In this document: positions 23,165 to 30,131 of the stretch, one piece after another
How positions within the stretch are numbered: position 1 is the stretch's first letter
How the letters are laid out: the number at the start of each line of letters is the position of its first letter
Origin: Bigelowiella natans CCMP2755
Taxonomy: Eukaryota; Protista; Cercozoa
Assembly (NCBI GenBank): GCA_000320545.1
Contig: ADNK01002252.1
Location: 1-42,971, forward strand
Reading direction: 5' to 3'
Length of the DNA stretch: 42,971 nt
Program-made: the position numbers and the translations under genes
Notes under the pieces: generated by a model
Databases searched by the model: none
What the model was told of the DNA's origin: nothing
What the model saw: only the letters and a program-made list of their open reading frames with translations

Positions 23165-23810
23165 AGACTGCACCATCTCTAGATCTACATATTGCATGGA
23201 TGATGCCAACTGCCTATTCGAAACGGTTTGTACTTATGCTATGCGCGCGATTCCAGCCAAATGCAATGCGAAAGCTTTAGTGCAAATACAATTTTTGACG
23301 CTAACCACAACGCTGAACGCTGGCTTTATAGCTAGCAGTTTAGGGCCATGTCGTATACGTACGCTGCTAGTAAGGCTGCTGGTGCGCGCAGCAGCGCCAT
23401 ATTGTAACTATTGTGGGTACGTAGGCTAGCAGGGTGCGTGCGACCGCACAACACAATGAGCAAAAAACAAGCTGCTGACGTGCAATGCTAGAATGGACAC
23501 ATCCAGCATGCATGCACTGTAGAAGTCATGCTAGCATGTGCATGCGCTGCGTCGCATTCATGTTCTATTGCGATGCATAGACAGTGCGTCGTGCAGAACC
23601 CTAGAACCAGGCACTGCGGCTGGCAACTACATGCTGCCAAGCATAAGCTAACATGTCCAAAGCTATTTACTGACCAATACCGAAATATCTATACTGTGAT
23701 TATATGATCGCTACATTGCGCCAAAAATGATAAGATCTGCTTAGCTCATCCGGTCGCACAAATGCCTATTGTTGTATTGTATAATTGAATAGCTAGCTGC
23801 TACAGCCCGC
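23165..23810. other. CTAG/TGCA/CATG-rich spacer block between convergent genes
   Basis: AATGCTAGAATG at 23484-23495; many GCTAGC, GCATGC and TGCA words. Confidence 0.55.
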
Positions 23811-23841
23811 TGTATCGATAAAGTTTTTGTCTTCTCCCTGA

Positions 23842-25646
23842 TCATCCGTTGCTCTCTCTTTCCACAACCCGAATCATTTTCAAAGTCCCAGCTGTATGTA
23901 TCGGATACCAACCGTGCAGCGCCATAAACTCAACCCAGGCCTATGTTATTCAAGATTAAAACAAGTGACTACGAAATGTTGAACGAAACATGTGATACCC
24001 CAGCCGCAACTCAGTTTTAAACATTTTTATTCGATCATTTGAGTTGCAGCATCCCTTGGCTACTATTAATCATTGAGCATAAAAAAAAATACGAGACTGA
24101 ATTCAACGCACACCTTCTTTGCTTCCGGACACTGCGTTTGTGAGTTATTTCCTGAGTATTAAAACACCTCAAAATCCAATCACCAATCTAAGTGAAAAAG
24201 CCCTTGTCATTTTTATAAGTGCTTGTTCTTACGTCTTTTTGGATGAAAGTCTGGGTAGTGTTGAGCGCAAGCTTCAGACTGGAGGATATAACAACAATTT
24301 CGGTGAACGCGACAAAGCCAACGGAAAGTAGGCTTCTTCAATTTTAAAACAAAATGCCAACAGAGAGGGCTTTTATTATGCGGTCGGAATAGGCAGTGCT
24401 AGAGTGTCTGTCCGGCAAAAAAAACAGCCTTTGGTGCTAAGTTTTGTTGCATGCCTCATGAAATGCGGCGGTATTGTCATTGAAGAATGGCAACCAAAAA
24501 TAGTGCTGCAAAGCTCAAACACCCACAACACGGAAATCGATCGAATCCATCCATCCGTGCACTCGAATAAGTTTCGGAATGAATTTTGTTTGGTTTGCAG
24601 ATAAACCTCCTTGAACTCCTCAAAAAGCGATTCTGGTAGCTGACGCTCATATGTCCGCACTTTCCCTTGAGATTAACACATTAGAAGTCATGAATGGATG
24701 AGGCGCTCTATTTTGCTGAAAGCGATGCTTGTGAGGAGAAGTCTACATAGTTCAAGCTGAGACATGCAGCCAACGCTATGATTGTCATCTTCTTTTGAGT
24801 AGTAGCGGGAAAATTTCCTTCTCACCCGTTTGGTTGATCCAGAAGCAGTACGGAGGGATGCGCTCCGTGATTGTAAACCTATGGTCGTCGCAGTATAGAG
24901 GACCGCGGCAAAGTAATGGACACAAGAAGGGAACAACGGCGTCGCTCCAATGAAGAATTTCTTTTGACGTCATCATTAGCGCACTATCTCTACATCATTG
25001 TTGTTGATGATCTTGTGGATGTACCACCACCACCATCACCACCATCCACAATCATCATCACTATCATTATCAGCATCATCATCATCGTCGTCGTCATCAT
25101 CATCATCTTCGGTGCTATCACCGACCCCAGTTTCAGATAGTTTTGCCCATCGGACCAGTCCATGCACGAGAACGTCACAATATCCTGAGCGTCATTTGTG
25201 ATTATGGCGGCGGATGGGGCAGCTGCATACTCGTATAGATCATGCTTACATCCAACGAAAAACCCCTTTCAGGATAAGAGGTTAATGAAGAGATAATTCA
25301 ATTTCATCCTCCTCCTAAATGCTACCCTACTGCTATTCCTACCTCCACGCGGGTATCCCTCTCGAAAGCCTGATAGAAAAACTAGCAATCAATCGTTGTT
25401 GGGCATAGCGAGGCAACCACCATGTTTTGATAAGGCAAGCAGGCGAATGACAGCAGGGATGGCGAACAAGTCAGCGGCAATACTGCCCCCCTCCCCACCG
25501 CTTCTCCGATTCTGCATTTTGTCACGCTTTAGAGAGACAAGCAGACAGCGGGTGATGACTTGGTATATAAACAACCGCAGGGGCGATAGCGGCGGCAGTG
25601 TTTAGCGAAGCAATATCAAACATTTGCCACACTCTCGTCTATCATT

Positions 25647-25682
<36 letters not shown>

Positions 25683-27278
25683 TTTTTCCTCTCCTCCTCC
25701 ACACCTTAATAAGTTTCGATAGCCCTCCCAGAATCGTATAGTCTTGGACGGTGCAATGCCGTATCATCTACCATACAAAGAGAGAGAGAGAGAGAGCAGC
25801 AATAATTCGTGAGTGCCTATGCTGGTGTGCTGAATGGCAAACACGGCGGAAGTCGCATTGTGTGGACATCGAAGAGTCTAGAGAGGGGCGGGCTGGCGGG
25901 GAGGAAGAGATCTGGAACGAACTAGTATGCAGGCAAAATATGCGCCATCTTTTCTTTGTTGATGTGTATATTGGGTCATCCTTCTCAATAATAATGCGCA
26001 CCTCGTGTGATCTAGAATCCTTCAAAGGTGGAAGCCCTGGAATATCCCGATCGAATCTAAAGAACAATGCCAGTACAGCCTCAGAGGAATAAGTAACTCG
26101 CTCTTCGCATACATGCACGTACGCATATGACATATGCAGTTTGCTGAATTAGTAGATTGTCACCGCCGTGTGAAACATACTACTCACTTTCTCATGCCAC
26201 TGAAGGATGCAATCGCTAGAAGCTGCTCTGAATATCGATGGTCATTGTCCGTTAAAACACACACACACACACACACGCACACACACCACCACCACCACCA
26301 TCACCATCATCGTCACCAGTAGCAGCAGCAGCAGAAGCAATAGTTCAATATCCATCATGAGAGCAAAGTCAGTATCTGTACGGATTACCCTCATTGTCGG
26401 CAATGGTTTTGTGTGTGCGCGCGCGCGCGCGTGTGTGTGTGCGGTGTTAGGTAAAAGAACAGTCATCTGACCGTCAAATGTTGACTTTTTCCGGTTGAAG
26501 AGCCCGTATCTAAGATGCGGTGAAACGAATCAAGTGAGCAGCATCTTCTTCGAAATTTTCTCTTTCTTCTTCTTCTCTTTCTTCTTCTTCTTCTTCTTCT
26601 TCTTCTTCTTCTTCTTCTTCTTCTTCTTCTTCTTTTTCTTCTTCTTTTTCTTCATAGTGAGAAGCACCCACTTATATCTAGCCCGCGTCGCAGCATTCAT
26701 GTGGTGCTTTTGAAGAAACTTCCTGAGGACGGTGTCATTCACCCTAATTTTTTAAATAATACAATATTGGTCGATGATCATTGCACGCGCTACCGTATCA
26801 TATTGCAGTGGCTAGAATCATCATTATCCTCATTAGCATCCCTCTCAGCGCAGATACTCTGCACGATAGGTGCTACAAGAGTGGGGTTGAAGGTGACGCG
26901 CGTGCGTTTGCATTTGTGTGTGTGCGTGAGGAGAAATAGAGAAAGAGGTATCGAGAATTGGTAGGTTTGTTGAAACCAACCGCTTCACGTCCAACGTCCG
27001 TGCGCCAACCCTCTGTGTTGCTCCTGTTATCGATCTCAGTCGCGATTTCACAAGCTCTTCATCAACGATCCATTGATCTTCCCAGACGTGTATTACTCGG
27101 CGGCTAATGTGTTGGTGGTGCTGCTGCTGCTGCCGATGGTCGTTATTTTTATCCTCTTGAAACAGAACTCCGGGGGCAGATCGCTGTATGAGAGTTTTAC
27201 AACAGTGATAGCACCGTGAGTACAGATCAACGGATTCCACGCTAAAAAAATCAACAGAAAAGAAAGTTAAAAACCACT

Positions 27279-27334
<56 letters not shown>

Positions 27335-27460
27335 GAATGTACACAGAGAGAGAGAGGGGGGGGAGAGTCACCATTGCTTTGGTAAGAACAGCTGACAAAT
27401 TGAAACTGAAGTCGATATCCTCGACTCTGATTTCCAATCATTTCCATTGGAATGATGACA

Positions 27461-27501
<41 letters not shown>

Positions 27502-27508
27502 ACACACA

Positions 27509-27556
<48 letters not shown>

Positions 27557-28875
27557 GTATTTTCCTCCTGCTGCACCAACCTCTTCGGTATTCTGTGGAG
27601 ACATATCGCAATCGAACTGCTCTTCTCCCCCTCGTGTTCTCGCGGTATTAATAGCTTGAATGTATTCAATATTCTTCTTCCACTCCCCTCTTCGCTTCCA
27701 ACACCATCGTTCTGATCGTTTGCAGCATCATAGTCTTTGTTGTCGATAACTTCTTCTTCTTCTTCTTCTTCTTTTTCTTCACTCTCCTGATCGCGGTCTT
27801 GCAGCATGGACGATGATGACAGCAGTTTTTCTTTTTCACTTGTTGTGAGCTCGACCTAAATGTATGTGTGTTGTTAGCAGGCGGTGGTGTATTAATGTGA
27901 GATCGACATAAATGTATGTGTGTTAGCAGGCGGTGGTGTATTAAAACTGTGATGAAAAAATGATTATTTATAGCTGCTGCCGATGTAGCATAGAACTGTT
28001 CATATCGACGAGTTTAATGATAACGGTATCATAGCTGCTGTCCACAACCATATCCCACATCTACATCATCGCTGTGATGTTGAAATCTAACCACAATTGT
28101 ATCTTCGAGACAAAGAAAGGATGATGGGGTCACTACCCATGATTGATGATATACGTGCAACTTATGCTACGATGTAGTAAAGTATAGGGAGTGAGGATGT
28201 GCGTATTACCCAGCCTGCAGGTTTGAGTTCATGCAGAAACTCTAAGTTGCGTCACACCAAGACAACAAACCGTATGAGCGTGTGTCGGTGTGTGTGTGTG
28301 TGTTTTGATAGCATTCATGAGCGCTATACGTCCTTGTTCGTGGACACTCGTAGGTAGATTATCTACCTTGAACATGCGAGAAGAAACCCCTTCCAGCCTC
28401 GCTATATCCTTCTCTGTCCTCACCGGTGTTACTGTTACTATTACTACTACCACTACTACTTCTACACCTGCTACTACTGTGGAGCTCATCTGGAGGGTAT
28501 AACCAACAAAATAATTCAAATGGATGCTAATCAGGATTCTGTGTGATAAACATACATTCTAGAGGCGCAGCAACTTGTCTTCGATTCCTAAAATCTGGTA
28601 TACAAGCAATGGGCTCATGGTTCTGCAGCCTTTCAGAGGAAAACTCTTCTTATCCCCATCCCCCCCCCCCTAGTTGTCCTCAACATACCGTTTCTTCGTC
28701 TCCTCGTCGGAATTTTGATACCAGACAAAGTTCCCCATCCGCACCAAGTTTTCTCCGAGATCGACGCTTGCAGTCGGTTTCGAATGGATGGGAGAGATCG
28801 CGGCACAGCGGCGCGGAGGCGGGGGCTCGTAGACACAGCAGTGGCCACGAGGAGCCACAGCGGCCCCAGCCTCAT
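23842..28875 (-). CDS. Intron-rich homolog of bacterial/phage Hef-like proteins: degenerate Vsr/PD-(D/E)xK-like region plus Mom-related GNAT-fold domain, with putative N-terminal targeting leader
   Basis: Phase-compatible exons give ...RRVIHVWEDQWIVDEELVKSRLRSITGATQRVGARTLDVKR|VNDTVLRKFLQKHHMNAATRARYK|YGLFNRKK...EQLLAIASFSGMRK|FDRDIPGLPPLKDSRSHE|MIRHCTVQDYTILGGLSKLIK|AFERDTRVE|DIVTFSCMDWSDGQNYLKLG|FTITERIPPYCFWINQT...AWVEFMALHGWYPIHTAGTLKMIRVVERESNG*. The motif order matches my recollection of the family consensus IHxWEDxW..VKSR..AR..FL..H..GL..L.A..F..E..R..GG.SKL.K.F..I.SYAD..WS.G..Y..LGF..G......G.LK. A few internal exons (~24000-24700, ~26250-26400) are unresolved. Confidence 0.75.
26563..26653. 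repeat. (TTC)n microsatellite, intronic
   Basis: Long TTC run with a few TTT interruptions; source of the spurious poly-F and poly-K ORFs. Confidence 0.95.
27458..27550. repeat. (CA)n microsatellite, intronic
   Basis: About 90 bp of CA repeat with rare CT/TA interruptions. Confidence 0.95.
27845..27944. repeat. ~50 bp direct tandem duplication spanning a splice acceptor
   Basis: TGTGAGCTCGACCTAAATGTATGTGTGTTGTTAGCAGGCGGTGGTGTATTAA followed by TGTGAGATCGACATAAATGTATGTGTGTTAGCAGGCGGTGGTGTATTAA. Confidence 0.9.
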
Positions 28876-29048
28876 AGTTGGCGTTATTAGAAGTTATGAT
28901 GTCGATATTTCATTGTCGCAAGGGGGAAATCGCATGATTTCGCCTCTAAAAAAAATGGCATTTTTTCGATTTATTCCTTGAGTTTTGAGGAATCACGAAA
29001 GCCCTGCTACATGTACTGCTATGCATCCTCCCCCCCGCCTTCCCATTG
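28876..29048. promoter_or_regulatory. Putative compact bidirectional promoter (173 bp between divergent ATGs)
   Basis: Lies between the minus-strand ATG at 28875 and the plus-strand ATG at 29049; AT-richer than both flanking coding regions. Confidence 0.5.
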
Positions 29049-30131
29049 ATGGACACAAACAAACGTAGTGGCGACGATGGCGACTTCGTCCGGATCAAGA
29101 TCGTGCATGTCTCCGACACGCATGGCATGCACCACGGCATCAAAGTCCCAGAGGGCGACGTGCTGTTCCACACCGGCGATTTCAGCAACGAAGGCGAAGT
29201 TGAGGAGGAGTGGCCCGACTTCAACGATTGGCTTGGGAAGATAAGGAAAAGATTTCGCCTTGGGGTGTATGTCATATTAGGAAACCACGACTGGAAGTTC
29301 TTAGATTCTGGGCGGCCAGCGGTCTCTGAAAAGTTGGTGAGCATTCTCGCAGACGAACAAAAACGGAGGGCGTGGTTAAATCAGAGACTGCCTAACGCTA
29401 CGCGGGTGTTGGACAACGAGATTATAGAATTGGAAGTTACTCCTCCTGATTCTAAAGGCTTGAAACGTGAATCCATATCTTTAACCGGAGGGCCAGCTGC
29501 TACCGCTACAATCTCCATATGTGCTTGTCCGTGGCAACCCTTCAACTATTCACCCACGTATCCTGACCGAGTGCCAAAGGAAGGTGAGAATTCAGGCCAT
29601 CGTAGAGTGTATGATCTTTATTCTAAGAGTTTTTCTAATGAACTTGACGGGTTTTCGGGGGGGGAGGGTGCCTGGTGCTATGAAAATATACTCCGGCCAG
29701 ACTCAAAAGATGCTGCTGCCATTGATGTGCTGCTCTCACACGTTCCTCCAAGAGGTGTATTCGACAGAATGCCCATCATTGGAAGTTGGGGAAGCTCAGA
29801 ATTTCTGAGACACTGCATCATGCGGAGAGAGAAAGCCATCCGATGCCATCTTTTTGGCCATGTGCACGCACAGCGCGGATTCTGGAGCCTGAAGGAGGCT
29901 GAGCAGCGCAAACGGGTCCTACAAGGGGGAGTGGAATACGCGAAAAGGACAGGTGACGAACAATATGTTCTCGAGATAATGGAAGCATCTGGCTTGCACT
30001 TCATGGCGAACACGGCACTGGCAAGTGATAGAACGGTGAATCTATTCGGGAAGAAGCGGATTGCGGGGACCCCGAGAGTGATAAATGGCATTTACAAGAA
30101 GGGGAAATGGCGATTTGATGCCAATTGCTGA
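29049..30131 (+). CDS. Calcineurin-like metallophosphoesterase (MPPED/239FB-like), intronless
   Basis: All five metal-binding motifs in one uninterrupted ORF: HVSDTHGMH, PEGDVLFHTGDFS, ILGNHD, DVLLSHVPP, HLFGHVH. ATG at 29049 (the track starts at the preceding TTG). Confidence 0.92.
   Translation: MDTNKRSGDDGDFVRIKIVHVSDTHGMHHGIKVPEGDVLFHTGDFSNEGEVEEEWPDFNDWLGKIRKRFRLGVYVILGNHDWKFLDSGRPAVSEKLVSILADEQKRRAWLNQRLPNATRVLDNEIIELEVTPPDSKGLKRESISLTGGPAATATISICACPWQPFNYSPTYPDRVPKEGENSGHRRVYDLYSKSFSNELDGFSGGEGAWCYENILRPDSKDAAAIDVLLSHVPPRGVFDRMPIIGSWGSSEFLRHCIMRREKAIRCHLFGHVHAQRGFWSLKEAEQRKRVLQGGVEYAKRTGDEQYVLEIMEASGLHFMANTALASDRTVNLFGKKRIAGTPRVINGIYKKGKWRFDANC

Follow-up and report, generated by a model that had tools for sequence, protein, structure and literature searches.

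A spliced, conserved host gene of bacterial origin in the alga Bigelowiella natans encodes a predicted Mom-like GNAT protein with a degenerate nuclease fold

The window analysed here is the whole of contig ADNK01002252.1 (42,971 nucleotides) from the chlorarachniophyte alga Bigelowiella natans CCMP2755. Its minus strand carries, between positions 23842 and 28875, one open frame of ~540 codons divided into 19 exons and 18 GT..AG introns. The gene derives from an old bacterial gene transfer and has been kept as a spliced, expressed and conserved host gene, while its product is predicted, from sequence profiles and a fold model, to join a dead Vsr-like nuclease fold to a GNAT domain related to Mom of phage Mu. 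A first-pass annotation, made from the letters of the DNA without database searches, had described this locus as a domesticated, intron-rich homolog of Hef-like and Mom-related prokaryotic and phage proteins, with about 15 or more short exons joining in phase. The motifs that it listed all occur on the minus strand in the given order, spread over pieces without stops from 27183 to 23845; the frame is open through the 19 exons, and the coordinates that it gave are exact.

The exon structure of the gene is supported by RNA evidence from three independent studies. Reads were placed on the region 23700-29000, and 15 splice joints are directly visible in the transcript contigs of runs X1, X3 and X5, where CT..AC on the plus strand corresponds to GT..AG on the minus strand. 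The spliced coding sequence proposed from the letters is thereby borne out. Each intron has a single GT..AG solution once its ends are shifted by 0-2 nt, and the total of exons and codons comes from frame bookkeeping over the RNA-supported exons. A few introns were inferred from the lengths of contig pieces, namely 24879-25125, the pair flanking 25705-25767, and 28490-28555. Removal of the last of these (66 nt, GTATGT..CAG) eliminates the sole in-frame stop, and the contig has 162 nt there, not 228; no other candidate intron satisfies both conditions. The exon at 25705-25767 lies in a region masked as a repeat in the read placement; it is the unique fit of 63 nt between an AG and a GT that coincides with a profile match, and the contig contains 61-63 nt otherwise unaccounted for. 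Transcripts extend to 28882-28883, past the ATG, and the 3' untranslated region (UTR) of the last exon reaches at least 23700. The few reads of X20, a true RNA-seq run of which ~6% was sampled, fall on exons.

Some contigs keep introns. The intron at 24279-24606 is retained in the X3 contig and spliced out in X1 and X5, and contigs of lower depth keep introns at 23913-24142, 24251-24636 and 25204-25361; these represent either unspliced pre-mRNA or DNA carry-over. One intron-retaining X1 contig (depth ~7) has a G>A change at position 24108, probably a strain polymorphism. Long microsatellites built of (CAT/CAC)n, (CA)n, (GA)n or (CTT)n units occur in nearly every intron, as the first-pass annotation had noticed (25018-25116, 25635-25700, 26249-26450, 26540-26650, 27270-27330, 27450-27550 and 27745-27775). 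The (CTT)n at 27745-27775 falls within coding exon 4, where it is read as a poly-Glu tract.

The closest relative of the gene is found in another alga. Searches were run with single exons of the B. natans gene, with the Amorphochlora ortholog described below serving as proxy for the family scans and the fold model. Exon 6, used as a phmmer query against 1.84 billion representatives, gave seven matches, the best being A0A7S0DIS6 (GAB5364550.1), an uncharacterised protein of Amorphochlora amoebiformis, which belongs to a different chlorarachniophyte genus. Exons E4-E18 all align in order to this protein, with 64% identity over 243 residues. When the Amorphochlora protein was used as the query, the next relatives were Bacteroidota proteins of ~285-290 aa (E 1e-33 to 1e-38, 33-41% identity) from Emticicia species, Prevotellaceae and metagenomes, and no further eukaryote appeared in this search, which may leave out B. 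natans itself. The ESM Atlas agrees on these relatives, with structure matches of TM 0.84-0.91 by target. A word-indexed search with well-placed exon rows returned phage and bacterial proteins and no eukaryote; short exons scattered when aligned as MAFFT rows, and the well-placed rows alone were kept for residue mapping. The best match is thus algal, and the nearest prokaryotic relatives belong to the Bacteroidota, as the first-pass annotation had proposed.

The wider family is that of the phage Hef-like proteins. Exon 6 matches PHROG 3339, annotated as 'homing endonuclease' (E 1e-4), to which exon 11 also has a weak match, and tblastn with exon 6 reaches 138 phage records, many of them annotated as 'Hef-like homing endonuclease'. 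These phage proteins, of ~540 aa, comprise zinc-ribbon or NUMOD modules, a Vsr/MTES_1575-like nuclease region and a Mom-like region. The phage PTm5 homolog reaches the Pfam family PF25680 (Mom) at E 2.5e-7 (31 bits), and PF25680 is present in many of the 6,407 relatives. Both the Hef-like relationship and the Mom-like character of the C-terminal half, which had been proposed from motifs, were thus recovered in the phage homologs. A local profile built from 53 bacterial and phage cores matched seven exons in collinear order (best 36.8 bits, E 6e-11), and a further profile (A2) found exon 6 genome-wide at E 3.5e-6. Since the seven profile matches are collinear and exons E4-E18 are collinear with an independent algal protein, the sequence evidence indicates that the family match is not due to chance.

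The same relationship extends over both domains. A profile of 24 Hef-like cores matches PDB 3r3p, the EDxHD/Vsr-like homing endonuclease I-Bth0305I, at E 3.9e-9, and also matches GNATs. Using hhalign, the algal and Bacteroidota proteins, which form a short subfamily, align with the Hef-like cores over 267 columns with a probability of 100 (E 7.8e-52; ortholog included). It has already been reported that Hef-type proteins belong to the nuclease family of I-Bth0305I (PMC3239194), and that jumbo phages carry Mom domains fused to a restriction endonuclease (REase) fold (Iyer et al. 2021, PMC7824862).

Direct detection with Pfam is poor in this branch. Nothing relevant was found by Pfam on the stop-free exon pieces of the B. 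natans locus, and neither the Amorphochlora ortholog nor the Bacteroidota relatives gave a Pfam match at E <= 1, the PF25680 threshold (27.1 bits) being reached among the relatives by more distant phage proteins alone. A six-frame genome-wide scan with PF25680 gave no match at the B. natans locus, and the genome-wide scans with PF25680 and PF18741 yielded weak matches on other contigs only. The single genome-wide PF25680 match, on another contig (C3477:26796-26963), is weak (16 bits) and has one internal stop.

The short subfamily is rare, being found in 4 of 301 sampled Bacteroidota genomes. In a quick maximum-likelihood tree, the branch separating it, alga included, from the Hef-like group has 100% support (SH-aLRT), so that the phylogeny places the algal sequence within a Bacteroidota-type subfamily. 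The place of the alga inside the subfamily is weakly supported (81-83%), and the algal sequence sits on a very long branch (1.96 substitutions per site). The prokaryotic affinity proposed by the first-pass annotation is correct as to a bacterial origin, but the type of protein donated is short, bacterial and chromosomally encoded, not a phage Hef protein. The B. natans protein keeps 48 of 69 near-invariant bacterial columns and the Amorphochlora protein 53 of 69. The algal sequence also contains the motifs characteristic of the short subfamily: a His in the dead nuclease, WED.W, NH[LM], GGL.KL, D-W-S-D-G and the C-terminal G..K.

The gene shows the features of a resident of the host genome. 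A genome-wide profile scan found it in a single copy in the 91-Mb genome, without the multi-copy pattern of homing elements. Its coding sequence has a TpA frequency of 0.041 and a CpA+TpG frequency of 0.133, and the means over all B. natans coding sequences are 0.041 and 0.137 (preprint 10.64898/2026.01.13.699255), which makes it compositionally a host gene. TpA hypermutation has been reported for B. natans; a connection with this gene was weighed and dropped, as TpA is normal in its coding sequence and nothing ties the two together. The description of the gene as domesticated is therefore well founded: it is spliced, expressed, intact, single-copy, host-like in its dinucleotides and represented by an ortholog in a second chlorarachniophyte genus.

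In the N-terminal half of the core, the EDxHD active site is not intact. Profile alignment shows that the short subfamily is without conserved counterparts of the Mg-binding Asp and the general-base His; the Asp of ELDIY, the Glu of IE.NG and the His of YWHS have none. The position of the conserved nuclease Glu is occupied by His in the short subfamily and in B. natans exon 4. Exon 5 had been considered as the site of the ELDIY/IEFDG motifs, but the subfamily alignment puts the equivalent at the end of exon 4, and the local 53-core profile gave no match to nuclease positions 1-86 upstream in the window. Because the Asp and His lack conserved counterparts and the Glu is replaced by His, the nuclease fold is judged from the alignments to be catalytically degenerate throughout the short subfamily.

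These data bear on a proposal with three versions: the locus would be a selfish homing endonuclease that is or recently was active, a contaminant from bacteria, or else a dead pseudogene. The phage relatives are indeed annotated as homing endonucleases. However, the algal protein lacks both the EDxHD catalytic residues and the N-terminal NUMOD or zinc-ribbon modules that target the phage proteins to DNA, and a selfish element, a contaminant or a pseudogene is at odds with a gene that is present once, has 18 spliceosomal introns and an uninterrupted frame, yields spliced transcripts, uses dinucleotides as its host does and has an ortholog in a second genus. All three versions of this proposal are contradicted by the introns, transcripts, frame, ortholog and lost residues, and we consider them scarcely credible.

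The C-terminal half of the core is a predicted GNAT domain. Mu Mom (8bv8) is the top Foldseek match of the fold model of the Amorphochlora ortholog, and the modelled GNAT fold is closest to that of Mu Mom, as the first-pass annotation had anticipated. No significant direct sequence match accompanies this likeness, hhalign against the single Mu Mom sequence giving E 0.42. A 2026 study indicates that Mu Mom moves glycine from Gly-tRNA onto the N6 of adenine in DNA, and names R111 and S124 as essential for catalysis (PMC13219725). In the same study, R151A was without detectable activity, D149A was strongly reduced, and H58, Y59 and Y159 were found to be important (PMC13219725; the numbering in the GenBank Mu record is 10 lower). 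Mapping through profile alignments shows that the B. natans protein keeps equivalents of H58, R111, S124 and Y159. The R151 position is Asp throughout the short subfamily, within D-W-S-D-G, and the D149 position is Asp in 19/19 bacterial members and Cys in both algae (T-F-S-C). The S[YF]AD pattern noted in the first-pass annotation is accordingly a property of the family but not of the B. natans protein, which reads TFSC. Three further positions that are near-invariant in bacteria have changed in both algae, from Tyr to Phe, from Phe to His and from Asn to Thr. Comparison of the two algal sequences indicates that these alga-specific changes arose before the two genera separated and were retained afterwards.

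The main rival explanation is that the protein is a pseudoenzyme, with both folds kept as a DNA- or tRNA-binding scaffold and no catalysis. The missing nuclease Asp and His of the whole subfamily, the two replaced residues of Mom (with R151A inactive in Mom itself), the length of the algal branch and the alteration of 16 to 21 of the 69 near-invariant bacterial columns in the algae would all fit such a protein. However, the essential R111 and S124 have been kept, together with H58 and Y159, and the bacterial subfamily has Asp at the R151 position without exception, so that this Asp looks like a subfamily-specific active-site residue and not a product of decay. Moreover, both algal genera have the same altered residues (F..C, H and T), and this implies constraint. 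On balance, the pseudoenzyme is a serious contender, although we regard it as rather unlikely.

Exons 1-4 add ~190 residues that are absent from the bacterial proteins. The leader has a hydrophobic core at residues 3-17 (mean hydropathy up to 2.4) followed, at residues 21-62, by an Arg/Ser-rich stretch with 10 K+R against 1 D+E and 8 S+T; Ser-rich and strongly acidic low-complexity sequence comes next, with 25 D+E in the 91 residues of exon 4, the same exon that carries the conserved His of the short subfamily. Over its first 18 residues the leader has 56% identity with the start of the Amorphochlora model GAB5364550.1. The pattern fits the signal peptide plus transit-peptide-like region used in chlorarachniophyte import. 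The leader thus resembles, in its composition, a signal peptide with a transit peptide, and seems to point to an organelle rather than to nuclear chromatin.

This has consequences for the idea that the protein is an enzyme of the nucleus and marks the adenine of chromosomal DNA with a Mom-like acyl group. The closeness of the fold to Mom speaks for it, and it has been proposed that jumbo-phage members of the family momylate DNA (PMC7824862). However, the conservation in Amorphochlora of a hydrophobic and Arg/Ser-rich leader argues for a secretory or plastid route, two residues essential in Mom are replaced, and the bacterial relatives are chromosomal genes that occur beside a gene for a tRNA enzyme and outside phage and restriction contexts. 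A nuclear DNA-marking enzyme is, in our estimation, quite improbable. The possible DNA-base modifying system suggested by the first-pass annotation is somewhat weakened as an idea.

The tRNA enzyme in question is MiaA, the tRNA A37-N6 prenyltransferase. A divergent MiaA paralog lies directly downstream of the bacterial short-subfamily gene in six of the nine contexts, often with an overlap of 8-17 nt, and the four genomes of the unbiased sample are all among these six. The neighbouring paralog scores 172-192 bits on TIGR00174, in comparison with 254-282 bits for the canonical MiaA encoded elsewhere in the same genomes. The neighbourhoods are ordinary chromosomal regions and not phage or restriction islands. 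The bacterial gene pair may constitute an undescribed module acting on tRNA or on adenine N6, and the coupling of the gene to a second MiaA suggests tRNA or adenine-N6 biology rather than homing. In the alga, the only MiaA-like locus found (C2810:4568-4912) is unlinked to the gene and nearer to canonical MiaA than to the divergent paralog. This MiaA/IPPT-like gene lies within a stop-free open frame of 560 codons. Co-transfer of a MiaA2 partner was rejected, the algal MiaA-like gene being of the canonical type.

The interpretation that we favour, with a probability of about 0.6, is that an ancient bacterial gene has become a host-adapted, organelle-directed nucleic-acid factor whose chemistry is unlike that of Mom. 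The protein would consist of a leader resembling a signal peptide and transit peptide, an acidic and Ser-rich linker, and a Bacteroidota-type core of ~290 residues, and would be imported into the plastid or the periplastidial compartment. The dead nuclease fold may serve as a nucleic-acid-binding module, while the GNAT domain may pass an acyl or aminoacyl group on to a nucleic acid or, at the least, bind to it. The most likely substrate would be tRNA, or adenine N6 in tRNA or DNA, because Mom works on adenine N6 with Gly-tRNA, and because translational coupling to a divergent MiaA is usual among the bacterial relatives. A chemistry different from that of Mom is suggested by the replacement of two Mom-essential residues. 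Judged from its sequence and by analogy with its relatives, the algal protein is probably sent to an organelle and has nucleic acid or tRNA as its target.

Several points weigh against this interpretation. The algal protein does not have the full set of residues essential in Mu Mom, D149 being Cys and R151 Asp; as R151A is inactive and D149A greatly reduced in Mom, the B. natans protein may be inactive as well. The MiaA neighbour is absent from three of the nine bacterial contexts, and no MiaA2-type partner was detected in the alga, where short exons could hide one. The organelle reading is drawn from the composition and conservation of the leader. Finally, the strand of the gene is given by its 18 splice-site pairs, the strandedness of X20 not being interpretable.

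A bolder variant of the proposed organellar factor is that the protein is an active enzyme which, with its Cys-for-Asp site and once imported into the plastid or periplastidial compartment, would draw on an aminoacyl-tRNA or acyl donor and attach a hitherto undescribed acyl-type mark to adenine, either in tRNA or in the DNA of the organelle or the nucleomorph, and that the bacterial pair forms a two-enzyme pathway for adenine-N6 hypermodification. We consider this version improbable. If it were true, the Mom lineage would have its first eukaryotic member in chlorarachniophytes, as an active enzyme, and the bacterial pair would be an unrecognised pathway.

To our knowledge, discussion of Mom relatives has until now been confined to phages and bacteria. 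The transfer by Mom of tRNA-charged glycine to DNA adenine represents a new category of GNAT chemistry, and the family, with >6,000 members, has no known function outside Mu Mom. What is new here is a eukaryotic branch of the Mom lineage that is expressed, intron-rich and kept across two chlorarachniophyte genera, that derives from a rare and uncharacterised chromosomal Bacteroidota subfamily with an apparently dead nuclease half, and whose predicted active site has been remodelled in a conserved way. Even if the protein were inactive, it would still show cleanly how a nucleic-acid enzyme of phage or bacterial type can become a host factor, in an alga already known for gene transfer.

The features of the gene and the bacterial loci of the gene pair are collected in Table 1. 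Upstream of the gene, at 29046-30131 on the plus strand, lies an open reading frame for a calcineurin-like metallophosphoesterase (Pfam Metallophos, E 6.6e-10). It is arranged head-to-head with the gene, ~170 bp from the ATG, and a bidirectional promoter region may be common to both.

Table 1. Coordinates of the B. natans gene and its exons in the window, and of the Bacteroidota loci with the gene pair
Feature	Coordinates	Strand	Basis or remarks
Whole coding sequence	23842..28875	-	ATG 28875-28873, stop (TGA) 23844-23842, 19 exons
Exon 1, N-terminal leader	28689..28875	-	Open frame; hydrophobic core, then Arg/Ser-rich stretch
Exon 2a	28556..28594	-	Joint 28594/28689; 3' end set by inferred 66-nt intron
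Exon 2b, Ser-rich	28367..28489	-	Joint 28241/28367; other end from inferred 66-nt intron
Exon 3	28210..28241	-	Joints in three runs, GT..AG
Exon 4, acidic low-complexity linker; its end is the start of the degenerate nuclease-like domain	27581..27855	-	Transcript joints, ortholog alignment
Exon 5, nuclease-like domain	27372..27426	-	Joint 27426/27581; aligns to Amorphochlora residues 93-109
Exon 6, last Vsr-like strand (IHVWEDQW), linker helix, GNAT start (GAR)	26981..27183	-	PHROG 3339, tblastn, profiles
Exon 7 (..RKFLQKHHMNA..), Mom H58 equivalent	26672..26743	-	Profile, transcript joints, ortholog alignment
Exon 8	26472..26509	-	Transcript joints, GT..AG, ortholog alignment
Exon 9 (LLAIASFS)	26188..26227	-	Transcript joints, ortholog alignment
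Exon 10	26002..26056	-	Transcript joints, ortholog alignment
Exon 11 (MIRHC..ILGGLSKLIK), Mom R111 and S124 equivalents	25705..25767	-	Inferred from piece length and profile match
Exon 12	25343..25369	-	Transcript joints, ortholog alignment
Exon 13 (DIVTFSCMDWSDGQNYLKL), predicted active-site strand; Cys at Mom D149, Asp at Mom R151, Tyr at Mom Y159	25126..25184	-	Profile, residue mapping, ortholog alignment
Exon 14 (PPYCFWI)	24826..24878	-	Transcript joints, GT..AG, ortholog alignment
Exon 15, start of helical insertion between last GNAT strands	24607..24665	-	Transcript joints, ortholog alignment
Exon 16	24233..24278	-	Transcript joints, ortholog alignment
Exon 17	24114..24151	-	Transcript joints, ortholog alignment
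Exon 18/19, last; final GNAT strands (GWYPIHTAGTLKM), stop, 3' UTR	23700..23940	-	Profile, transcript joints, ortholog alignment
Bacteroidota loci of the gene pair	L088:8001-9831; L089:8001-9828; L091:6001-7711; L097; L098; L099		

Among known proteins, the Amorphochlora protein A0A7S0DIS6 is the nearest to the B. natans protein, as an ortholog with collinear core exons. The two proteins have in common the lineage-specific changes TFSC..DWSDG, IRHC and HTAGT and a similar N-terminal start, M-R-x-G-x-L-W-L. However, the Amorphochlora protein has 403 aa in comparison with ~540, and is without the long acidic and Ser-rich linker of B. natans.

The Bacteroidota proteins of ~270-300 aa (such as Emticicia aquatica EMA8858_00123 and E. 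aquatilis GCM10011514_07560) have the same two-domain core, in which the nuclease residues are also lost and WED.W, NHL, GGL.KL and D-W-S-D-G are present. Unlike the algal gene, they have no leader, linker or introns, they read Tyr-x-Asp where the algae carry Phe-x-Cys, and most are encoded directly upstream of the divergent MiaA paralog.

The phage REase-Mom fusions (PHROG 3339; DUF723/DUF7487 plus PF25680; PA5oct gp196, PTm5 ORF-301 and AR9 g265) are homologous over the Vsr-like and GNAT domains. They differ in their N-terminal zinc-ribbon or NUMOD DNA-binding modules, and in that both the E..D..E..H nuclease motif and the SYAD.RW motif are intact; furthermore, the algal protein belongs to a separate clade. 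I-Bth0305I and Vsr (PDB 3r3p) have an EDxHD fold homologous to the domain that the wider family has at its N-terminal side, while the algal and Bacteroidota subfamily has lost the conserved Mg-binding Asp and general-base His.

Finally, Mu Mom shares with the algal protein, besides the modelled fold and the four equivalent residues, an insertion between the last GNAT strands. The two differ at the D149 and R151 positions, in the absence of a significant direct sequence match between Mom and the algal or subfamily proteins, and in the extra nuclease-derived domain at the N-terminal side of the algal protein.

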